A stretch of DNA of 64,000 bases from positions 186,001 to 250,000 of IMG/VR virus record IMGVR_UViG_3300023083_000001; one strand, 5' to 3'. This document shows, piece by piece, positions 4,013 to 48,366 of the stretch. A program made the position numbers and the translations under genes. Within the stretch, counting starts at the first letter, position 1. The number at the start of each line of letters is the position of its first letter. The notes beneath the pieces were generated by a model. It had not been told where the DNA came from. It made no database searches and worked only from the letters and a program-made list of their open reading frames with translations.

Positions 4013-4048
4013 CGGACACCCTTCGGGGTGTCTGTACTTTCTTTTTTT
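4013..4048 (+). terminator. Intrinsic terminator with cUUCGg loop
   Basis: GGACACCC-TTCG-GGGTGTCT plus T-tract. Confidence 0.85.
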
Positions 4049-11692: not shown

Positions 11693-11758
11693 CATACAGC
11701 TCACATCCCGCCTATTACAGGTCAGGGATGTGGGTCGTTATGCCCTACTGTTTTTTTT
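11691..11758 (+). terminator. Hairpin terminator
   Basis: CACATCCC...GGGATGTG flanked by ACATA/TATGC, then T-run. Confidence 0.65.
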
Positions 11759-11810: not shown

Positions 11811-13973
11811 ATGGCCGCATTGACTAACCCATTCCTTCTTCCGGTTGAGCAGTATCAACGGGACATCGATATCAAGAAAGGTTATCTCCAACAAGTTGCT
11901 AAGTATCTGTCCTGCGCGCTGAAGAAGCCGTACAAGCAATGTCTGGAGTTTGTACTCAACGAAGTGAAGGACCGCAACAGCGAGTTCCGCTTCCGTGATC
12001 CAAAGATGTTGCAGTTGATCCGCAAAGGGGTTGGTGAGCGAGTTCAGGACGAAACTACCTTTCTGGATTACGTTGACGCTATTATCGACACCGGTCGTAT
12101 TGTTTCCCCCTCGCTTGTGGTCTACGAGCGTCCTGAGGTTGAGAAGTCTGTAACCGCTGAATGGCAAGATGAGAACATCAAAGCTCGTAAGCGTTCAAAG
12201 ACTGCAATGTTTGAATTGAAACAACTCGGCGAATTGATGAAGTCGGCTTTGGCTGACTATGACCAGAACGCCCGTAAGATCCGTATCAACTCCGTGTCGG
12301 GTATGCGCGGCTTTGAAGGTAACCCACTGTTTCTGGCATCGGGTCACTCCAGCCTGACATCGATGTGTCGTGCTGCTGCTGGGTACGGTAACGGTACGGT
12401 TGAGCGTTTCCTGGCAGGCAGTCGTCATTATCACACGCCAGAGATTGCCAAAGCTAACATCATGGCCATGATCACCATCGAAGACAAAGCTCGTTTCCTG
12501 GCTGTGATCTCCCGCTACAACCTGGTGTATCCAACAGTTGAAGATGTGGTTTCGATGATCCGTCGGTCTACCGACCTGTACTGGGAAACTCCAGACGAGA
12601 TGGATCTGATCGAAGAGATGGTCAAAGGCATGGATCAACTGGAACGGGCTATCGTCTGTTATTCAGGCGACATGTTCCACTTGGCTAAACTCAATCCAGA
12701 GATTGTGCGCGAGTTGTTTGGCGAGATGATTGCCATCAACATCGAAGACATGGATGACGTGGACACTGCGGCTATCCTCAAAGGTCTGGACAGTACAGAG
12801 AAAGCGTACATCAACGCCCTGTGTGCTAACGTGCTTAAAGGTACGACCCTCAAACAAGTCCAGGCAAACAATCCAGCGGGCTGGCAGACGATCGGCAAGA
12901 CAGCCCAACGCTTTATATGGGCCTGTCAGAAGTATCATCAGCTAATCAATACACTGTTCGCTCCGATGCACTTGCCGCCCACTGTGGCGTCTTTGAGAAG
13001 CATCCAGCGCCGTGTCTGTCTGGCAGCTGATACTGACTCCTCTATCTTCACTACTGAGTATTGGGTGGAGTGGTACACCGGACATCTGAAACGCGGAGAA
13101 GTCGAAGACCGCATTTGGTATCTGGCGACTTACATGGTTTGTCAGTGCATTGCTCACTCACTCGCCATGTTGTCTGCTAACGTTGGTGTTGAGCGTTCAC
13201 AGATCTTCCGTCTGGCCATGAAGAACGAGTATGCGTTCCCGCAGTTCGCACTCACCAACTTGGCTAAGCACTACTATTCTACCATGTCGATGCGTGAAGG
13301 TAACGTATACGACGAGTTGGAGTTGGAGATCAAAGGTGTGGAGCTACGTGGGTCAACGGTACCTAAGCACATCTTGAAAGCTGCCGAAGACCTGATGCGC
13401 AATACTTTGCACGCTATTGACCGGGGTGAGAAACTCAACGCCGGCAAGGTATTGGCATTGGTAGCAAGTTATGAATTGGACACGGTGAAGTCGATCAAGC
13501 GCGGGGAATACACTTACCTGCGCAGTGCTCAGATCAAACCTGACAGTCCGAAGATGCCGTACCACGAACTGTGGCAGGATGTGTTTGGTCCTAAATACGG
13601 CATGAGTATCAACCCACCGTACCCATGTGTGAAAGTCACTACTGAACTGGGCAACAAAACCCAACTCAAGGAATGGCTGGACAACATGGAAGATAAAGAG
13701 CTGGCTGGCCGTATGGCAGCATGGCTCATCAAGTACAACCGTAAGGACCTGCCAACTGTCTTCTTGCCAACCATGGCGATCAAAGGCAAAGGTCTTCCTC
13801 TGGAGATTCAAGATGCTGCGAATGTTCGTAAACTGGCCTACCAGATCAACTCCGGTTTCTATCGCATCCTCGAATCCATGGGTCTACACATCGTCGACCG
13901 CAACAACTATCGACTGGTGTATGACTTTCTAAGACTCGACGATTCGGTCGATGCACCGGAGGTGGTTGTATGA
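11811..13973 (+). CDS. Split family-B DNA polymerase, C-terminal catalytic subunit (phiKZ gp50-like)
   Basis: Motif B QxxxKIRINSVSG, motif C AADTDS, KHYY and EIKGVE. Confidence 0.9.
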   Translation: MAALTNPFLLPVEQYQRDIDIKKGYLQQVAKYLSCALKKPYKQCLEFVLNEVKDRNSEFRFRDPKMLQLIRKGVGERVQDETTFLDYVDAIIDTGRIVSPSLVVYERPEVEKSVTAEWQDENIKARKRSKTAMFELKQLGELMKSALADYDQNARKIRINSVSGMRGFEGNPLFLASGHSSLTSMCRAAAGYGNGTVERFLAGSRHYHTPEIAKANIMAMITIEDKARFLAVISRYNLVYPTVEDVVSMIRRSTDLYWETPDEMDLIEEMVKGMDQLERAIVCYSGDMFHLAKLNPEIVRELFGEMIAINIEDMDDVDTAAILKGLDSTEKAYINALCANVLKGTTLKQVQANNPAGWQTIGKTAQRFIWACQKYHQLINTLFAPMHLPPTVASLRSIQRRVCLAADTDSSIFTTEYWVEWYTGHLKRGEVEDRIWYLATYMVCQCIAHSLAMLSANVGVERSQIFRLAMKNEYAFPQFALTNLAKHYYSTMSMREGNVYDELELEIKGVELRGSTVPKHILKAAEDLMRNTLHAIDRGEKLNAGKVLALVASYELDTVKSIKRGEYTYLRSAQIKPDSPKMPYHELWQDVFGPKYGMSINPPYPCVKVTTELGNKTQLKEWLDNMEDKELAGRMAAWLIKYNRKDLPTVFLPTMAIKGKGLPLEIQDAANVRKLAYQINSGFYRILESMGLHIVDRNNYRLVYDFLRLDDSVDAPEVVV

Positions 13974-18134: not shown

Positions 18135-18172
18135 CAGGAGAGGGGTAATTCCCTCTCCTGCTTCTTTTTTTT
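18135..18172 (+). terminator. Intrinsic terminator after chmA
   Basis: CAGGAGAGGG...CCCTCTCCTG plus T-run. Confidence 0.85.
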
Positions 18173-22615: not shown

Positions 22616-22662
22616 GCATACACCCCCAGGCGAAAGCCTGGGGGTGGTCTGTTCTTTTTTTT
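22616..22662 (+). terminator. Intrinsic terminator
   Basis: CACCCCCAGGC-GAAA-GCCTGGGGGTG plus T-run. Confidence 0.85.
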
Positions 22663-36981: not shown

Positions 36982-37018
36982 GCATAGAGAGAGCCACCTT
37001 CACCGGTGGCTTTTTTTT
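36982..37018 (+). terminator. Intrinsic terminator
   Basis: AGCCACC-TTCACC-GGTGGCT plus T-run. Confidence 0.75.
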
Positions 37019-40307: not shown

Positions 40308-40352
40308 GCATACAGCCCGGCTCACGCCGGGCTGTATGTCACTTCTTTTTTT
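40308..40352. terminator. Bidirectional hairpin of the ACAGCCCGG family
   Basis: GCATACAGCCCGG-CTCACG-CCGGGCTGTATGT plus T-run. Confidence 0.8.
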
Positions 40353-40364
40353 TGTATCAAACCA

Positions 40365-44251: not shown

Positions 44252-44716
44252 ATGTCAGCATCTCATCAAACTACGCGATTCGGTTCGCGAGACGTAGATC
44301 TCAGCGCTCAGTGCGATGAGATTGAAAAGGACACGGTCAAGCTTTGCCGCTCGGTCGGGCTCGCTATCCGCGCAGCTATCCAACCCATTGAAGAACTACC
44401 GCTGTCGTTGTCGCTTCTCGAACAGGCGGGTCGTAAGGCCGACATTCCTAAACTGGGTCAGCTGGTCCAGTCGATTGCTCGCGATCAAGACAAGTTCATC
44501 GCTGAGAAAACGGCCCTCGATGCAAAGTTCGAGTCGCTGAAGAACGACCGCCCTACCAAGAAAGGTAGTCTGTCTCGTTATTCCAACAGCGTATCCTTTC
44601 TGGGTCATGAATACATCGACCTGAACCAACGGATCGCTCAAACCATGGGGATGACGATCGGCGATTACTTCGATCTCATCCAACCACTAACCGAACCCGC
44701 TGAGGCTGTATCGTGA
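44252..44716 (+). CDS. Hypothetical coiled-coil protein
   Basis: GAGG RBS; GTGA coupling. Confidence 0.75.
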   Translation: MSASHQTTRFGSRDVDLSAQCDEIEKDTVKLCRSVGLAIRAAIQPIEELPLSLSLLEQAGRKADIPKLGQLVQSIARDQDKFIAEKTALDAKFESLKNDRPTKKGSLSRYSNSVSFLGHEYIDLNQRIAQTMGMTIGDYFDLIQPLTEPAEAVS

Positions 44717-46527
44717 CCGATAGCAAAACTCCTGACGACGAAGTATCGAAAGACGAACCCGGTGTCCACACCGGTAGCCATCAAGACGATAGCTCTGCAC
44801 CTGCCGAGACGGTTGTTGATTCGGCAAGCGGTGACGAACCTCTCCTGGCACCGCCGGTTGATGAGGATGAAGATACGGTCAGTCAGCATCTGGTTGACGA
44901 TCCTATTCCAGCTCCTGAGCCACAAACAGAACCTGCCGGTCAAGCAGGTGCTGACGAAGAACCTGAAGCAGCGCCTGACGTTTACGCCGGTATCTACACA
45001 CCGAACGAGAACGTCACTGAAACGCTGAAAGTGCTCGACGAACTCACCGACGATGAACTGCGGGCTTTGGCCAAAAACGGTTCGGTACTTCTTTCCAACA
45101 TGGAAGAAGAAGAGTTGATCAAGATCGATGCCATGGTCCGTCAGCAAATCGGACGTAACCAGAAGCATCGTCGTAAGCTGGTTGACGATGGCGTTCCAGG
45201 TGATTGGCAAGCTGTTGAATTCATGCGGGGCGATAAGCCCATCATCGTCTTCATGACAGAAGCTGAACGTGAAGCAATGCAGGTGCTCGAGTTTTACAGC
45301 CGCTCGATCCGTCACGGTACTGGTCAGGATGTTTTCACCGACGGTAACAAGTGGACCAACCTGCCGGCGATTGGTGATTCGAAGATTGCCATGGGTCTGG
45401 TTGACCACAGCAAGAACAAAGATCCGATCGTTGTGCTGCGTCATAAGCTGGGTCTGTCGAGTGAACACTCCGTCCCGATGTGGGGCACGGGTCTTCATTT
45501 GTCTCTTGAAGGACCAGGGGCTCTTGAGAACCTGATGCTTGACACCAAGCTGCTCCTCGAGAAGATCGATCAGGGCCGTGGCAGCAGCGGTTATGTCTAC
45601 AGCGCCTCATCGGTTTACCTGAACCGTGAAGTGGCCTCGTTCGTGCTGAACAAGGTACGTTACTCTACGGCTGGTACTGTGGACGTGGAAACGCTCAAGG
45701 ACCTGTTGCTGCTGACTGACCTGGAACCACTGGCTCTGGGTGCTGCATCGACCATCTTCCCAGACGGTTACATGTTGCAACGTCCGTGTCTCACCTCCCA
45801 GGGTGGTTGTGGTCATGTGATTGAACGCCGTGTGAATCTACGTCGGATGCTCTTTGTCAGTGATTCCAAGCTGACCAAAGATCAGTTGCAGTTCATGTCC
45901 AAGCGTTCGGGTCGTGTTGACATCTCCACCATCAAGACTTATCAGGAGCAGATGCGTCCTCATATTTCCCGCCTGGTGGCGTTGAAGAACGGTCAAGCAA
46001 TCCGTCTGCGCGTTCCGACCATTGCAGCCTACGAGCGTATCGCCGGCGCCTGGATGGACAAGATGCAGAACAAGGCCAAGGAGCTGGTGCAGTCCAACGC
46101 CAATGAACAAGAACGTAACAACTACATGGCTCGGGCTACCAACGTTGCATTGTTGATGGCGTACGGTCATTGGGTTGAAGCGTTTGTGGACTTGGGTAAC
46201 GGTCTTGACGATGATGCAGTTGACATCGTTAGCCGTGCTGGTTCCAAAGATGCAGAAGTTCAGTACAAGGCGGACATGGCGATTGACAAGTTGCTGGAAG
46301 ATCTTTCCGGCGACGTTGACTTGGCTACGAAAGTAGTCACTGCGATTGAGCAGTTCATCGTCGACATGACCATCGCAACGGTAGCTGTACCTAAGGCAAT
46401 CTGCCCTAAGTGCGGTAATCCGGTATCGGGTGACGAATCTTCCAAGCATCCACACTTGGTTAATATTAACCCGATCGAACTTTTTTTTACCCTACTCCGC
46501 CACAAAATAATGACTGCCGGCGGATAA
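44713..46527 (+). CDS. Putative tail/baseplate assembly chaperone (T4 gp26-like architecture)
   Basis: 604 aa; C-terminal CPKCG then INPIELFF; slippery T8 at its 3' end. Confidence 0.6.
   Translation: MTDSKTPDDEVSKDEPGVHTGSHQDDSSAPAETVVDSASGDEPLLAPPVDEDEDTVSQHLVDDPIPAPEPQTEPAGQAGADEEPEAAPDVYAGIYTPNENVTETLKVLDELTDDELRALAKNGSVLLSNMEEEELIKIDAMVRQQIGRNQKHRRKLVDDGVPGDWQAVEFMRGDKPIIVFMTEAEREAMQVLEFYSRSIRHGTGQDVFTDGNKWTNLPAIGDSKIAMGLVDHSKNKDPIVVLRHKLGLSSEHSVPMWGTGLHLSLEGPGALENLMLDTKLLLEKIDQGRGSSGYVYSASSVYLNREVASFVLNKVRYSTAGTVDVETLKDLLLLTDLEPLALGAASTIFPDGYMLQRPCLTSQGGCGHVIERRVNLRRMLFVSDSKLTKDQLQFMSKRSGRVDISTIKTYQEQMRPHISRLVALKNGQAIRLRVPTIAAYERIAGAWMDKMQNKAKELVQSNANEQERNNYMARATNVALLMAYGHWVEAFVDLGNGLDDDAVDIVSRAGSKDAEVQYKADMAIDKLLEDLSGDVDLATKVVTAIEQFIVDMTIATVAVPKAICPKCGNPVSGDESSKHPHLVNINPIELFFTLLRHKIMTAGG
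46482..46524 (+). promoter_or_regulatory. Putative -1 programmed frameshift signal
   Basis: T TTT TTT heptamer, 7-nt spacer, TCCGCC/GGCGGA stem. Confidence 0.7.
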
Positions 46528-46976
46528 GGACCAACGCCAAAGGGGTATTCGAAGATTTCATTCACCACGTCGGTAACCTGAACTTTGGGGAGGGTAAATC
46601 GCCCTTCACAACAGGGACTGAGTTAAACGACTTGGTGATGAATGAAACGATTCCCGATGACTGGACCCGTCAACTGGCAATGATGGAAACGTACGATCAG
46701 TCCATGGGGATCTTTGACCATGACTCAGCTGAAATGACTGATCCACTTTCTGTCATTGGGTTCCACCCCGCCGAGGATCCTGTAACAGGAAACAGACTGG
46801 AGATCTTGATGCGTGAGTTGATCGCGTGTCGAATTCCAGAGCTGACCAACACGCCTCTTGCTGAACTCCTCAACTATCCACGTCACTTACTGGATATGTT
46901 GCTCAAGGACGGACGTAAGGCGCGTAAGAAGGAAGAGGCGGATATAACCCAGTTGAACCTGGACTTGTCCGGGTAG
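46488..46976 (+). CDS. -1 frame extension of 44713-46527 (track ORF 46632-46976)
   Basis: Frame is open from 46470 to TAG 46976; no convincing RBS for its internal starts. Confidence 0.65.
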   Translation, partial: YPTPPQNNDCRRIRTNAKGVFEDFIHHVGNLNFGEGKSPFTTGTELNDLVMNETIPDDWTRQLAMMETYDQSMGIFDHDSAEMTDPLSVIGFHPAEDPVTGNRLEILMRELIACRIPELTNTPLAELLNYPRHLLDMLLKDGRKARKKEEADITQLNLDLSG

Positions 46977-46997: not shown

Positions 46998-47031
46998 GCA
47001 TACAGCCCCGGCTCAGGCCGGGGCTGTATGT
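46998..47031. terminator. Bidirectional hairpin of the ACAGCCCGG family
   Basis: GCATACAGCCCCGG-CTCAGG-CCGGGGCTGTATGT. Confidence 0.75.
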
Positions 47032-47034
47032 CGC

Positions 47035-48366
47035 TTACTGAAATTTACCGTTCAAAGCCTTACGGTACTTCCAGAGTACTGCCTGTTCCGACAAGGTGAA
47101 GTCTTCTTTCTTATCAGTCACGTAACGGTCCATCGTCTTCGCTACGTTGAGCGCAGCTTTGGATACAGCGATCGTTACGTTGTTACGGTTGGCTACCAAC
47201 ATCCCGAGAGAATTCTCAAGCGCTGTGAAGCCTTGCAGGATCGAAGTCAACGACATGAAGAATGGAGCCAGCTTGTTGACGTAAACATCTTGCAGCGAGG
47301 CAGGAAGCTTCGTCTCGTCGAAGGACTTGATACGATCCAACGTCGGAGTGATGCGCGCAGTACTGCTGTTGATCAGACCGTTCAGATCCGAAGACCAGTC
47401 ATCCACACGCCCTGTCACGATCGTCTTGGTGAAAGCAGCTTCATCAATAGGAGGACGGGAGTTCTCAGCACTGCGATAGCTGTTGAGCAGGAAACCCGAC
47501 ATGCTTTGGAAGTTGGTCATCTTACTGTTGACCTGAACACTCTTGGTGGAGTATCCAGCTTCAGTCACCAGGCGCGTCAACGCCCCGCTGGTCATGTCTA
47601 CCAACTCGATCTTGGCAATCGCCAGGTCGATGTCGGCAGCCGTCTGCGCAACGATCAACTCTTTCAGGAACGCATCCACACCTTCAACGAATGGCGAGAC
47701 TTTGAGAGTCAACACACCGATGATGGTTTTGAACGCTTCATGATGTTGTTCCGGCGCTTGTAGAAAACTCTGCTTCAGGCCGTTCCATTTGTAGGCGTTG
47801 TGGGCTTCGCTCTTGAAAGCACCATCTTTGACTTTCTTGAAGTCACCAGCCATGCGAGTGCCGGAGACGACTTTGTCGGTTTCGATGATGTAGTTCTGAA
47901 TTGCAATGAGTTTCCCGCCCACGTCGTCCACCGCTTGTGTACGCTGAGTATCGCTTTGAATGAATTGCCACAGACGTTTGAACGACTTGACAACGAAATC
48001 CAGGATCTGACGAAGTGCCTTGACTACAGCTTCAAACGCTGTACGTGTAAAGCCTTCCATCGACACGTCGTAGTTCACCCTGGAAGGTTCCAAGGTAAAG
48101 CTGTTGATCGGGTATTGATCGACCAGATCGTTGAGTGCTGGGTACAGAGGTGTTAAAGCCTTGACGCGTTCCATGTCACCACGGCAGATGTACTTACGGT
48201 CTACGATGGTGCTGTAGGCGTCGAACACCGTTACCATGTTACCGTACTCTTGATCATGCACTGGGTTCAGCAGGTCTGTATCTACAGCACTTTTAGCTCC
48301 GATCTCATCGGAGAAAGCTTCACCGGATTCGAATGACAGATTGTCCAAAGCGATACTTACGTTCAT
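47035..48366 (-). CDS. Virion head protein
   Basis: LSFE and VSME sites followed by the amphipathic helix LRQILDFVVKSFKRLWQF. Confidence 0.7.
   Translation of the reverse strand: MNVSIALDNLSFESGEAFSDEIGAKSAVDTDLLNPVHDQEYGNMVTVFDAYSTIVDRKYICRGDMERVKALTPLYPALNDLVDQYPINSFTLEPSRVNYDVSMEGFTRTAFEAVVKALRQILDFVVKSFKRLWQFIQSDTQRTQAVDDVGGKLIAIQNYIIETDKVVSGTRMAGDFKKVKDGAFKSEAHNAYKWNGLKQSFLQAPEQHHEAFKTIIGVLTLKVSPFVEGVDAFLKELIVAQTAADIDLAIAKIELVDMTSGALTRLVTEAGYSTKSVQVNSKMTNFQSMSGFLLNSYRSAENSRPPIDEAAFTKTIVTGRVDDWSSDLNGLINSSTARITPTLDRIKSFDETKLPASLQDVYVNKLAPFFMSLTSILQGFTALENSLGMLVANRNNVTIAVSKAALNVAKTMDRYVTDKKEDFTLSEQAVLWKYRKALNGKFQ

Follow-up and report, generated by a model that had tools for sequence, protein, structure and literature searches.

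A conserved putative -1 frameshift site in a core gene of nucleus-forming jumbo phages distantly related to T4 baseplate-hub assembly chaperones

Results

A T-run near the end of a 604-codon reading frame

A core gene of nucleus-forming jumbo phages, distantly related to the T4 baseplate-hub assembly chaperones gp26 and gp51, carries a run of T's at which ribosomes most likely slip back one base and produce a second protein with a 162-residue extension. The analyzed window is a stretch of 64,000 nucleotides (positions 186,001 to 250,000) of the metagenome-assembled IMG/VR record IMGVR_UViG_3300023083_000001. The T-run is present in every relative examined, phiKZ, PhiPA3, and Goslar included; the signal is not annotated in the nine isolate records that we opened; and a literature search for gp77, gp077, cg18, or frameshift yielded no description of the recoding.

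The reading frame 44713..46527 (+), hereafter ORF0, has a GTG start and encodes 604 amino acids. Near its end it reads GAA CTT TTT TTT ACC, so that the T8 run (46481-46488) contains an in-frame X_XXY_YYZ heptamer, T_TTT_TTT (46482-46488), at codons Phe591-Phe592, followed by twelve sense codons (TLLRHKIMTAGG) and the TAA stop (46525-46527). The -1 frame is closed by TAA at 46467-46469, four codons before the heptamer, and is then open at 46470..46976 (168 codons); hence, entry into this frame must be at or after the T-run, and the two frames overlap at 46470..46527 (+). The slip predicts a product of 592 + 162 = 754 amino acids. The extension (46488..46976, +; 162 codons plus TAG at 46974-46976) starts with a Pro-rich, low-confidence linker, followed by a conserved HV...FG motif (46563-46586), located upstream of any start codon, and by a predicted helical domain (phrog_12109). 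The first canonical start in the -1 frame is TTG 46632, with no SD-like core 4-12 nt upstream; the open reading frame that a gene caller would report (46632..46976, +; 114 aa) is an N-terminally truncated part of the extension, and the PHROG match begins 69 nt upstream of this start. The sequence features described in a first-pass annotation of the same DNA were all confirmed.

The run is the only one of T>=7 in the 64-kb window that lies inside a long reading frame. The other six follow GC-rich hairpins; of these, three lie in no open frame of 80 or more codons, and three lie 17-68 nt inside the upstream end of an open frame, probably ahead of its real start.

The upstream co-directional reading frame (44252..44716, +; 154 aa) occupies the position of phiKZ gp078 and had no family hit; its TGA overlaps the GTG start of ORF0 (GTGA), and it is probably in the same operon. 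Between the end of the extension and a convergent minus-strand reading frame ending at 47035, there is a perfect 12-bp hairpin at 47000..47029 (arms 47000-47011 and 47018-47029), a likely bidirectional terminator closing the transcription unit, although it was not confirmed by a consensus scan that requires a T tail. The neighbors are the gp078-like reading frame, a gp079-like head protein, a virion RNA polymerase subunit, and the convergent gp86-like reading frame; the same synteny is seen in PhiPA3, phiKZ, and Goslar.

Conservation of the arrangement

Megablast of the region against the phage collection found nothing, and the best protein identity to a sequenced relative is 31%. Comparison was made with distant homologs, conservation among which had been proposed beforehand as a test of the frameshift. 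All 60 distinct related loci and five further isolate genomes (GC 27-61%, about 20-30% protein identity) have a T-run at the same Phe codons and a -1 reading frame that opens before it; the arrangement is far beyond chance. In the 60 loci the run comprises T5-T9, mostly T7 or T8, and lies 10-40 codons before the ORF0 stop, and the -1 reading frame has 152-226 aa. Among the 58 loci used for codon counts (all but PhiPA3 and RP12), 49 have an in-frame T_TTT_TTN heptamer, and others have G_TTT_TTT or only T_TTT; the first Phe codon is TTT in 58/58, against a background TTT share of 0.33, and the preceding codon ends in T in 52/58, against a background of 0.27. No other run of T>=6 occurs in 94 kb of the homologous ORF0s. 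The five further isolates are Goslar, phiKZ, Bacillus phage AgentSmith, phiEaH2, and SA002; the same is seen in PhiPA3, pEa_SNUABM_54, RP12, and FLC1-1B. The T-run partly overlaps a conserved Phe-Phe motif, hence, part of its conservation is at the protein level, although the codon choice and the flanking T are not. Six loci have only T5, where a tandem slip is not possible.

The downstream reading frame shows no conserved start column. Its first canonical start ranges from 115 nt before to 413 nt after the ORF0 stop, often deep inside the conserved domain, and only 2 of 60 loci have an SD-like core before it. Gene-called representatives of the family start at profile positions 1-59, and none of the top 150 is a long in-frame fusion. 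The start-less region is coding: between the ORF0 stop and the first start, substitutions fall by -1-frame codon position as 93/80/233 over 483 codons, and the HV...FG motif lies there. The overlap is dual-coding, as, across related pairs, zero-frame third-position change is 0.199 per codon in the overlap against 0.458 upstream, i.e., more than halved. In about 20 loci, the window included, a -1-frame stop lies 12 nt or less before the T-run, which pins the entry point.

Downstream RNA structure

The stem TCCGCC/GGCGGA proposed in the first-pass annotation as following the heptamer exists (46496..46524, +; 6-bp core, 17-nt loop, 7-nt spacer), but is statistically unremarkable: its MFE is -14.1 kcal/mol (z = -1.16), 25 of 200 dinucleotide shuffles fold as well, and it ranks at the 56th percentile of equivalent windows inside the same gene. 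Pseudoknots aside, 13 of 60 loci have strong hairpins, several clades carrying them 5-10 nt after the heptamer, while about 25 loci are unusually unstructured downstream; a universal stimulatory hairpin was rejected, and no downstream structure is shared by the family.

Identity of the gene and its extension

ORF0 is the window phage's copy of Chimalliviridae core gene cg18 (phrog_4585, E 1.6e-73; phiKZ gp077, PhiPA3 gp074, Goslar gp081), listed as hypothetical protein. Residues 1-95 are acidic and predicted to be disordered; residues 210-604 form the conserved predicted fold. A Foldseek search of the AF2 model (pLDDT above 85 over most of 210-604; two alignment rows from annotated-record loci were left out for modeling) against BFVD matched two models annotated "Baseplate hub assembly protein, T4-like" at E 2e-5 and 3e-5, probability 1.00, target TM 0.52 and 0.57, as well as "Baseplate protein" models. 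By sequence the link is weak. Pfam scans of four reading frames of the window gave no hit for either part of the pair (E<=0.1 for ORF0), and one of 51 relatives hits PF12322 (T4_baseplate) at 5.3e-5, whereas T4 gp26 and gp51 both hit it, at 1e-64 and 4e-52. The C-termini align colinearly as AVP.CP.CG...FF.LL, over 27 columns to T4 gp26 and over 54 columns to a 23-member gp26 alignment, although with hhalign probabilities of only 23% and 9%. The first-pass statement that T4-like gp26 proteins end in CxxC...FF is right for T4 gp26, which ends in CPECG...KEFFELL and a stop.

Other searches were negative. Profile searches of both families against PDB sequences gave only chance-level hits, Foldseek against the PDB gave nothing for either model, no solved structure of this family is in the PDB, and NCBIfam scans of the 51 relatives gave only noise. 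The extension has no recognizable relative outside this family in the searches performed. The likeness of the extension to GT-type tails, suggested by the first-pass annotation, was not statistically supported: it amounts to a 12-column motif with hhalign probability 5.6% to an E' alignment, and an ESM-Atlas lead to GpE clusters (0.89, 134 shared features) below the tool's own reliability mark.

Discussion

Interpretation

The first-pass observation of a slippery heptamer before an open -1 frame holds in full. Its interpretation is only partly supported: the programmed -1 shift fusing the two reading frames is strongly supported by comparative evidence, and the relationship to T4 gp26 is borne out as a distant one, while assignment to the G/GT family, the stimulatory role of the stem, and the likeness of the extension to T/E' tails are not supported.

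In the explanation that we favor (probability roughly 0.78), most ribosomes would terminate at 46525-46527 and make the 604-aa protein, while a fraction would slip back one nucleotide while decoding the two Phe codons of U_UUU_UUU and continue to 46976, making a 754-aa isoform in which the last 12 residues are replaced by the Pro-rich linker and a roughly 110-residue helical domain. The ratio of the two isoforms would be fixed by the slip frequency. By analogy with lambda G/GT and P2 E/E+E', one isoform would act as the hub or tail-assembly chaperone proper, and the extended one would tether it to a second, as yet unidentified partner. Our analysis establishes the signal, its family-wide conservation, protein-coding selection on the start-less -1 region, and the distant fold and motif link to PF12322; production of the long protein, the ribosomal nature of the slip, its efficiency, the need for both isoforms, and the chaperone role are inferred. 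T4 gp26 and gp51 are listed as hub assembly chaperones (PMC3004832). The phiKZ virion atlas does not mention gp76, gp77, or gp077, and the Goslar virion paper does not mention gp80-gp82 (its "gp77" is an unrelated capsid decorator), which is compatible with a non-structural assembly factor; however, the gene is not next to tail genes.

Alternative explanations

The main, although unlikely, alternative is transcriptional slippage, in which the phage or host RNA polymerase stutters on the A8 template run and adds one U to a fraction of transcripts, so that ordinary translation gives the same fusion. The window and many relatives have T8 or T9, lengths at which polymerase slippage occurs in bacteria (Thermus dnaX, Shigella mxiE, IS elements); about 25 loci, many of them T8/T9, have no downstream structure at all, as expected if no ribosomal stimulator is needed; and the polymerases in question may be the jumbo-phage multisubunit enzymes, of unknown slippage behavior. 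On the other hand, 32 of the 58 counted loci have T7 or T6, which is short for efficient polymerase slippage; the heptamer is in the X_XXY_YYZ phase in 49 of 58 loci, though the Phe-Phe motif also fixes the phase; the hairpins in several clades are typical of ribosomal stimulators; and the same heptamer type is an annotated -1 translational frameshift site in P2.

Less likely still, the downstream reading frame might be translated on its own, from a non-canonical start or by termination-reinitiation, the T-run being just a pair of Phe codons. A few loci have a start close to the ORF0 stop (in RP12, ATG overlaps TGA; in two other loci it lies at +17), three members of one clade have a broken T-run together with an ATG at the FG motif, and public records annotate two genes. 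However, there is no conserved start column and almost no SD, the protein sequence under purifying selection extends upstream of every canonical start in most loci, synonymous change is suppressed from the T-run onward, before the ORF0 stop, and a Phe-Phe motif alone does not explain the use of TTT and of the flanking T. A homopolymer error in this metagenomic assembly or a decayed gene, conceivable as homopolymers are error-prone and no relative above 31% identity could confirm the T count, is very improbable, since the same -1 split recurs in 60 independent loci and nine isolate genomes sequenced by different groups, with T-runs of different lengths all preserving the -1 relation, no in-frame fusion is seen among the top 150 representatives, and both frames are under purifying selection.

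A more speculative and doubtful possibility is that the frameshift is an obligatory feature of cg18 throughout the family and in related Bacillus and other jumbo phages, and that the extension is the true evolutionary counterpart of the T/E' domain of lambda- and P2-type chaperones, sharing a (G/P)-(L/M)-S-L-x-E-(F/L) helix motif. In that case, the two-isoform principle, thought to be missing from T4-like and giant contractile-tailed phages, would be ancestral to tailed phages and merely grafted here onto a gp26/gp51-type body.

Implications

Nucleus-forming jumbo phages (phiKZ, PhiPA3, 201phi2-1, Goslar, SPN3US-like phages) are heavily studied models and therapy candidates. Recognizing the recoding would correct the annotation of the many public records matching this gene (216 phage records); all nine isolate records that we opened list two separate genes or leave the region unannotated, and in the phiKZ reference record about 220 nt after gp077, in the stretch between its stop and PHIKZ076.4, are unannotated, although they are coding in the -1 frame. 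It would add a roughly 700-750-aa protein to the core proteome, and assigns a testable morphogenetic role, that of a hub or tail assembly chaperone with two isoforms, to two families of unknown function, phrog_4585 and phrog_12109. It would also extend the two-isoform strategy of lambda and P2 to a different chaperone family, in phages for which Xu et al. (2004) reportedly described no such frameshift, and the T5 to T9 sites, with and without hairpins, in hosts from Pseudomonas to Bacillus, form a natural series for studying what bacterial ribosomes need in order to frameshift.

Comparison with known systems

The lambda G/GT and P2 E/E+E' tail assembly chaperones (Xu, Hendrix and Duda 2004) likewise have two isoforms sharing an N-terminal body, the longer one being made by a -1 slip a few codons before the stop into a start-less overlapping reading frame, an arrangement conserved although the sequences diverge; in the present case this is a comparative inference. 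The annotated P2 site, GGT TTT TTG, is of the same heptamer type, and the presumed role is in tail or baseplate morphogenesis. The lambda and P2 chaperones bind the tape measure through the G part and the tube protein through the T part, and are absent from the virion. However, no homology was detected: hhalign probability is 0.2-0.4% to lambda G and T and 0.1% to P2 E, and no Phage_TAC, Phage_tail_T (PF06223), or Phage_P2_GpE (PF06528) Pfam hit was found among 51 members of either part. Homology of the extension to lambda T, P2 E, or P2 E' was rejected as unsupported, and homology of the body to lambda G was rejected. The protein has 604/754 aa, against about 90-140 and 140-280 aa, and is 4-6 times larger, and the gene lies among virion-RNA-polymerase and head genes rather than between the tube and tape-measure genes; in phiKZ the putative tape measure is orf181, far away. 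Hence, "G/GT-type" holds only as an analogy of expression strategy.

With T4 gp26 and gp51, the similarity is in the predicted fold and in the C-terminal P.CP.CG...FF.LL motif at the very end of the core. T4 gene 26 also yields two products, gp26 and an internally initiated gp26'. However, T4 gp26 has 208 aa and ends right after FFELL; its Phe codons are TTC TTT, which is not slippery; it has no extension, and the next gene, 25, simply starts at an overlapping TAATG in the -1 frame, so T4 does not share the frameshift. The jumbo-phage protein is 2.5-3 times larger, with extra N-terminal parts.

Compared with canonical -1 programmed ribosomal frameshift sites (dnaX A_AAA_AAG; HIV-1 U_UUU_UUA), no stimulator is conserved across the family, no upstream SD-like element is evident, and six loci retain only U_UUU (T5); however, the window has an in-frame X_XXY_YYZ heptamer of U's, some clades have a hairpin 5-10 nt downstream, and AgentSmith has exactly U_UUU_UUA.

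Organization of the locus

The sequence features described in the first-pass annotation are all present. The open reading frame 44713..46527 (plus strand, GTG start, 604 aa; here and in its homologues, ORF0) reads GAA CTT TTT TTT ACC near its end, followed by 12 more sense codons and TAA. The T8 run occupies positions 46481-46488, and T_TTT_TTT at 46482-46488 is an in-frame X_XXY_YYZ heptamer. The -1 frame carries TAA at 46467-46469 and is then open to TAG at 46974-46976, 168 codons in all; its first ATG, GTG, or TTG is TTG at 46632, with no SD-like core in front of it. A slip at Phe592 predicts a product of 592 + 162 = 754 aa.

The stem TCCGCC/GGCGGA (46496-46524), pointed out in the first-pass annotation, exists but is ordinary: its folding energy is -14.1 kcal/mol (z = -1.16), 25 of 200 shuffled sequences fold as well, and it ranks at the 56th percentile of equivalent windows within the same gene. 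Hence, a stimulatory role of this stem is not supported.

Six other T7/T8 runs are found in the window, all on the plus strand, at 4042-4048, 11751-11758, 18165-18172, 22655-22662, 37011-37018, and 40346-40353. Each follows a GC-rich hairpin and a short ...CTG..TTC spacer, so that they look like a repeated intrinsic-terminator module (perhaps a terminator plus promoter). Three of them lie in no open frame of 80 or more codons, and three lie 17-68 nt inside the upstream end of an open frame, probably ahead of its real start; therefore, the run at 46481-46488 is the only one inside a long ORF. No A7 or longer run occurs anywhere in the window. A perfect 12-bp hairpin (47000-47029) lies between the end of the extension ORF (46976) and a convergent minus-strand ORF ending at 47035; its arms resemble the hairpin preceding the T8 run at 40346, but it lacks the T tail. 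The convergent ORF (47035-48366, minus strand, 443 aa) has a weak, sub-threshold match to PF25617 (PhiKZ vertex-binding protein gp86; E = 0.0048, 16 bits against a cut-off of 26).

Identity of the genes

The 604-aa protein matches phrog_4585 (E = 1.6e-73), and the -1 stretch matches phrog_12109 (E = 3.6e-16), both being families without an assigned function. The second match begins at nucleotide 46563, 69 nt upstream of the first start codon. A tblastn search finds the first protein in 216 phage records, and in several phages a single-frame alignment to the -1 stretch spans two annotated genes. By annotation and synteny, the pair corresponds to PhiPA3 gp074 + gp073, phiKZ gp077, 201phi2-1 gp136 + gp135, EL gp047, and Goslar gp081 + gp082. 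The supplement of the Chimalliviridae core-genome paper lists it as cg18, "hypothetical protein" (PMC10299810). The phiKZ reference record (NC_004629) leaves about 220 nt between PHIKZ077 and PHIKZ076.4 unannotated (13685-13904, minus strand), although the stretch is open and conserved in the -1 frame of gp077; PHIKZ076.4 (80 aa) is only the C-terminal half of the extension. The window itself belongs to IMG/VR contig 3300023083_000001 (258 kb).

Conservation of the slippery site

To test the frameshift comparatively, we collected 62 IMG/VR loci and nine isolate genomes; the 60 distinct loci span 27-61% GC and show only about 20-30% protein identity to the window. Every one of them has a T-run (T5 to T9, with T7 and T8 dominating) at the same Phe codons, 10-40 codons before the stop, and a -1 ORF of 152-226 aa that opens before the run. 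Codon usage at the site was counted in 58 loci, leaving out PhiPA3 and RP12. Of these, 49 have an in-frame T_TTT_TTN heptamer, while the rest have G_TTT_TTT or a bare T_TTT. The first Phe codon is TTT in 58/58 loci, although TTT constitutes only 33% of Phe codons elsewhere in these genes, and the preceding codon ends in T in 52/58, against 27% elsewhere. No other run of six or more T occurs in 94 kb of these ORFs. Goslar has exactly the same fifteen nucleotides as the window at the site; phiKZ, SA002, phiEaH2, and Bacillus phage AgentSmith all have canonical T7 sites.

Coding in the -1 frame

The aligned -1 translations are conserved from the slip site onward, with motifs including FF(Y)P, HV..P.FG, YE..YGI.DH, and FG.S..EFL.LPR. 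The first canonical start, on the other hand, sits anywhere from before the ORF0 stop to 413 nt after it, often inside the conserved domain, and only 2 of 60 such starts have an SD-like core. A profile search of 1.8 billion representative sequences yielded 1737 clusters; the top 150 are gene-caller products of 105-186 aa that begin at profile positions 1 to 59, and none of these is a long in-frame fusion.

In related pairs, we examined the stretch between the ORF0 stop and the first start of both sequences. Substitutions there fall 93/80/233 on -1-frame codon positions 1/2/3 over 483 codons; hence, as inferred from sequence comparison, this stretch is translated in the -1 frame. In the overlap, the zero-frame third-position change drops to 0.199 per codon from 0.458 upstream, and the first-position change drops to 0.069 from 0.217, which is the signature of dual coding. 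In about 20 loci, the window included, a -1 stop lies 12 nt or less upstream of the T-run, and the reading frame can therefore only be entered at the run. These data indicate that the downstream ORF is not an independent gene.

Mechanism

The simplest account is tandem -1 slippage of two tRNA-Phe on U_UUU_UUN. What we observe directly is the site, its conservation, and the traces of selection in both frames; the production of the fusion protein, the ribosomal nature of the slip, and the role of the products are inferred. Recoding is strongly supported by the comparative evidence, with a probability of about 0.9 that a -1 fusion product is made and about 0.8 that the slip is ribosomal. RNA-polymerase slippage on T8/T9 cannot be excluded, although it fits the majority T6/T7 sites poorly. 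Six loci with only T5 cannot make a tandem slip, and may use single-tRNA slippage or may have moved toward independent initiation. Within one clade of IMG/VR loci (L050-L055 in our collection), L050 and L053 keep a canonical T7 site, while L051 and L055 (T5) and L052 (T6, wrong phase) have lost it and carry an ATG at the conserved FG motif; this may be a lineage switching from frameshifting to separate initiation.

No stimulator is shared by the family. In 13 of 60 loci, hairpins in the top decile of their own gene are seen 5-10 nt after the heptamer. In one clade (loci L016, L026, L029, L032, L033, and L035), an 8-10-bp hairpin starting about 9 nt after the T-run pairs ACTCAGCG, the conserved Gln-Arg codons of ORF0, with CGCTGAGT, which contains the ORF0 stop codon; its arms are invariant and hence provide no covariation. 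In contrast, in about 25 loci (L007-L019, L034, L045, L050-L056, L065, and L066) the sequence 3-55 nt after the heptamer is C/A-rich and G-poor and folds worse than at least 90% of windows in the same gene, the opposite of a stimulatory hairpin, and we have no explanation for this.

Predicted structure and function

An AlphaFold2 model of ORF0 is confident over most of residues 210-604. The N-terminal residues 1-95 (44713-45000) are strongly acidic, Pro/Asp/Glu-rich, predicted to be disordered (pLDDT below 50), and not conserved among relatives. A structural search of the model against the PDB returned no neighbour. In BFVD, after the jumbo-phage orthologues, the model matches two "Baseplate hub assembly protein, bacteriophage T4-like" models at E = 2e-5 and 3e-5 (probability 1.00, target TM 0.52-0.57). 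T4 gp26 and gp51 both belong to PF12322, and one of the 51 relatives hits PF12322 at 5.3e-5. Profile alignment with hhalign lines up the extreme C-termini, T4 gp26 ending AVP.KCPECG...KEFFELL-stop and the window reading AVPKAICPKCG...IELFFTLL, although the probabilities are low (9-23%). gp26 and gp51 are classed as hub assembly chaperones (PMC3004832), and NCBI names the family "gp26 family baseplate hub assembly chaperone". The phiKZ virion atlas does not mention gp76, gp77, or gp077; the Goslar virion paper does not mention gp80-gp82, and its "gp77" is an unrelated capsid decorator. A chaperone role is plausible, about as likely as not or slightly more so.

The slip falls in the last helix of the core, exactly where T4 gp26 ends. 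The long isoform would thus keep the whole core and swap a 12-residue tail for a low-confidence Pro-rich linker and a helical domain, for which no relatives were found outside its own family.

Comparison with known systems

T4 also makes two products from its gene 26 (NC_000866, 3803-4429, minus strand), but by a different route and without a slippery site: the gene ends ...TTC TTT GAG TTA CTA TAATG, gene 25 starts in the -1 frame on the overlapping ATG, and the record also annotates an internal in-frame product 26'.

The interpretation in the first-pass annotation, which proposed recoding of a G/GT-type tail assembly chaperone, is supported only in part, as the recoding holds up while G/GT membership is rejected. 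No homology to lambda G or T or to P2 E was detected, and both the size and the genomic position are wrong. One lead remains: the ESM Atlas placed GpE-family clusters among the neighbours of the extension (0.89, with 134 shared features), and we found that PF06528 is in fact the E' frameshift extension; however, a profile comparison with an E' alignment gave only a 12-column match, "fGlSl.eFL" to "mSLtEL", at a probability of 5.6%.

We found no mention of this recoding in full-text literature searches and in targeted reading of the phiKZ atlas, the Goslar structure paper, the core-genome paper and its supplement, two transposon studies, and the antisense study, although, with most subscription-journal papers outside the search, an older mention, e.g., in the original genome papers, cannot be ruled out; nor is it annotated in the model phages that we checked. 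The strategy itself is the same as in G/GT, and the annotated slip site of P2 is GGT TTT TTG. A conserved -1 frameshift giving two isoforms of a phage morphogenesis chaperone is already known, while its inferred occurrence in this gene family (gp26/gp51-like, cg18) and in this phage family is new as far as the searched literature shows.
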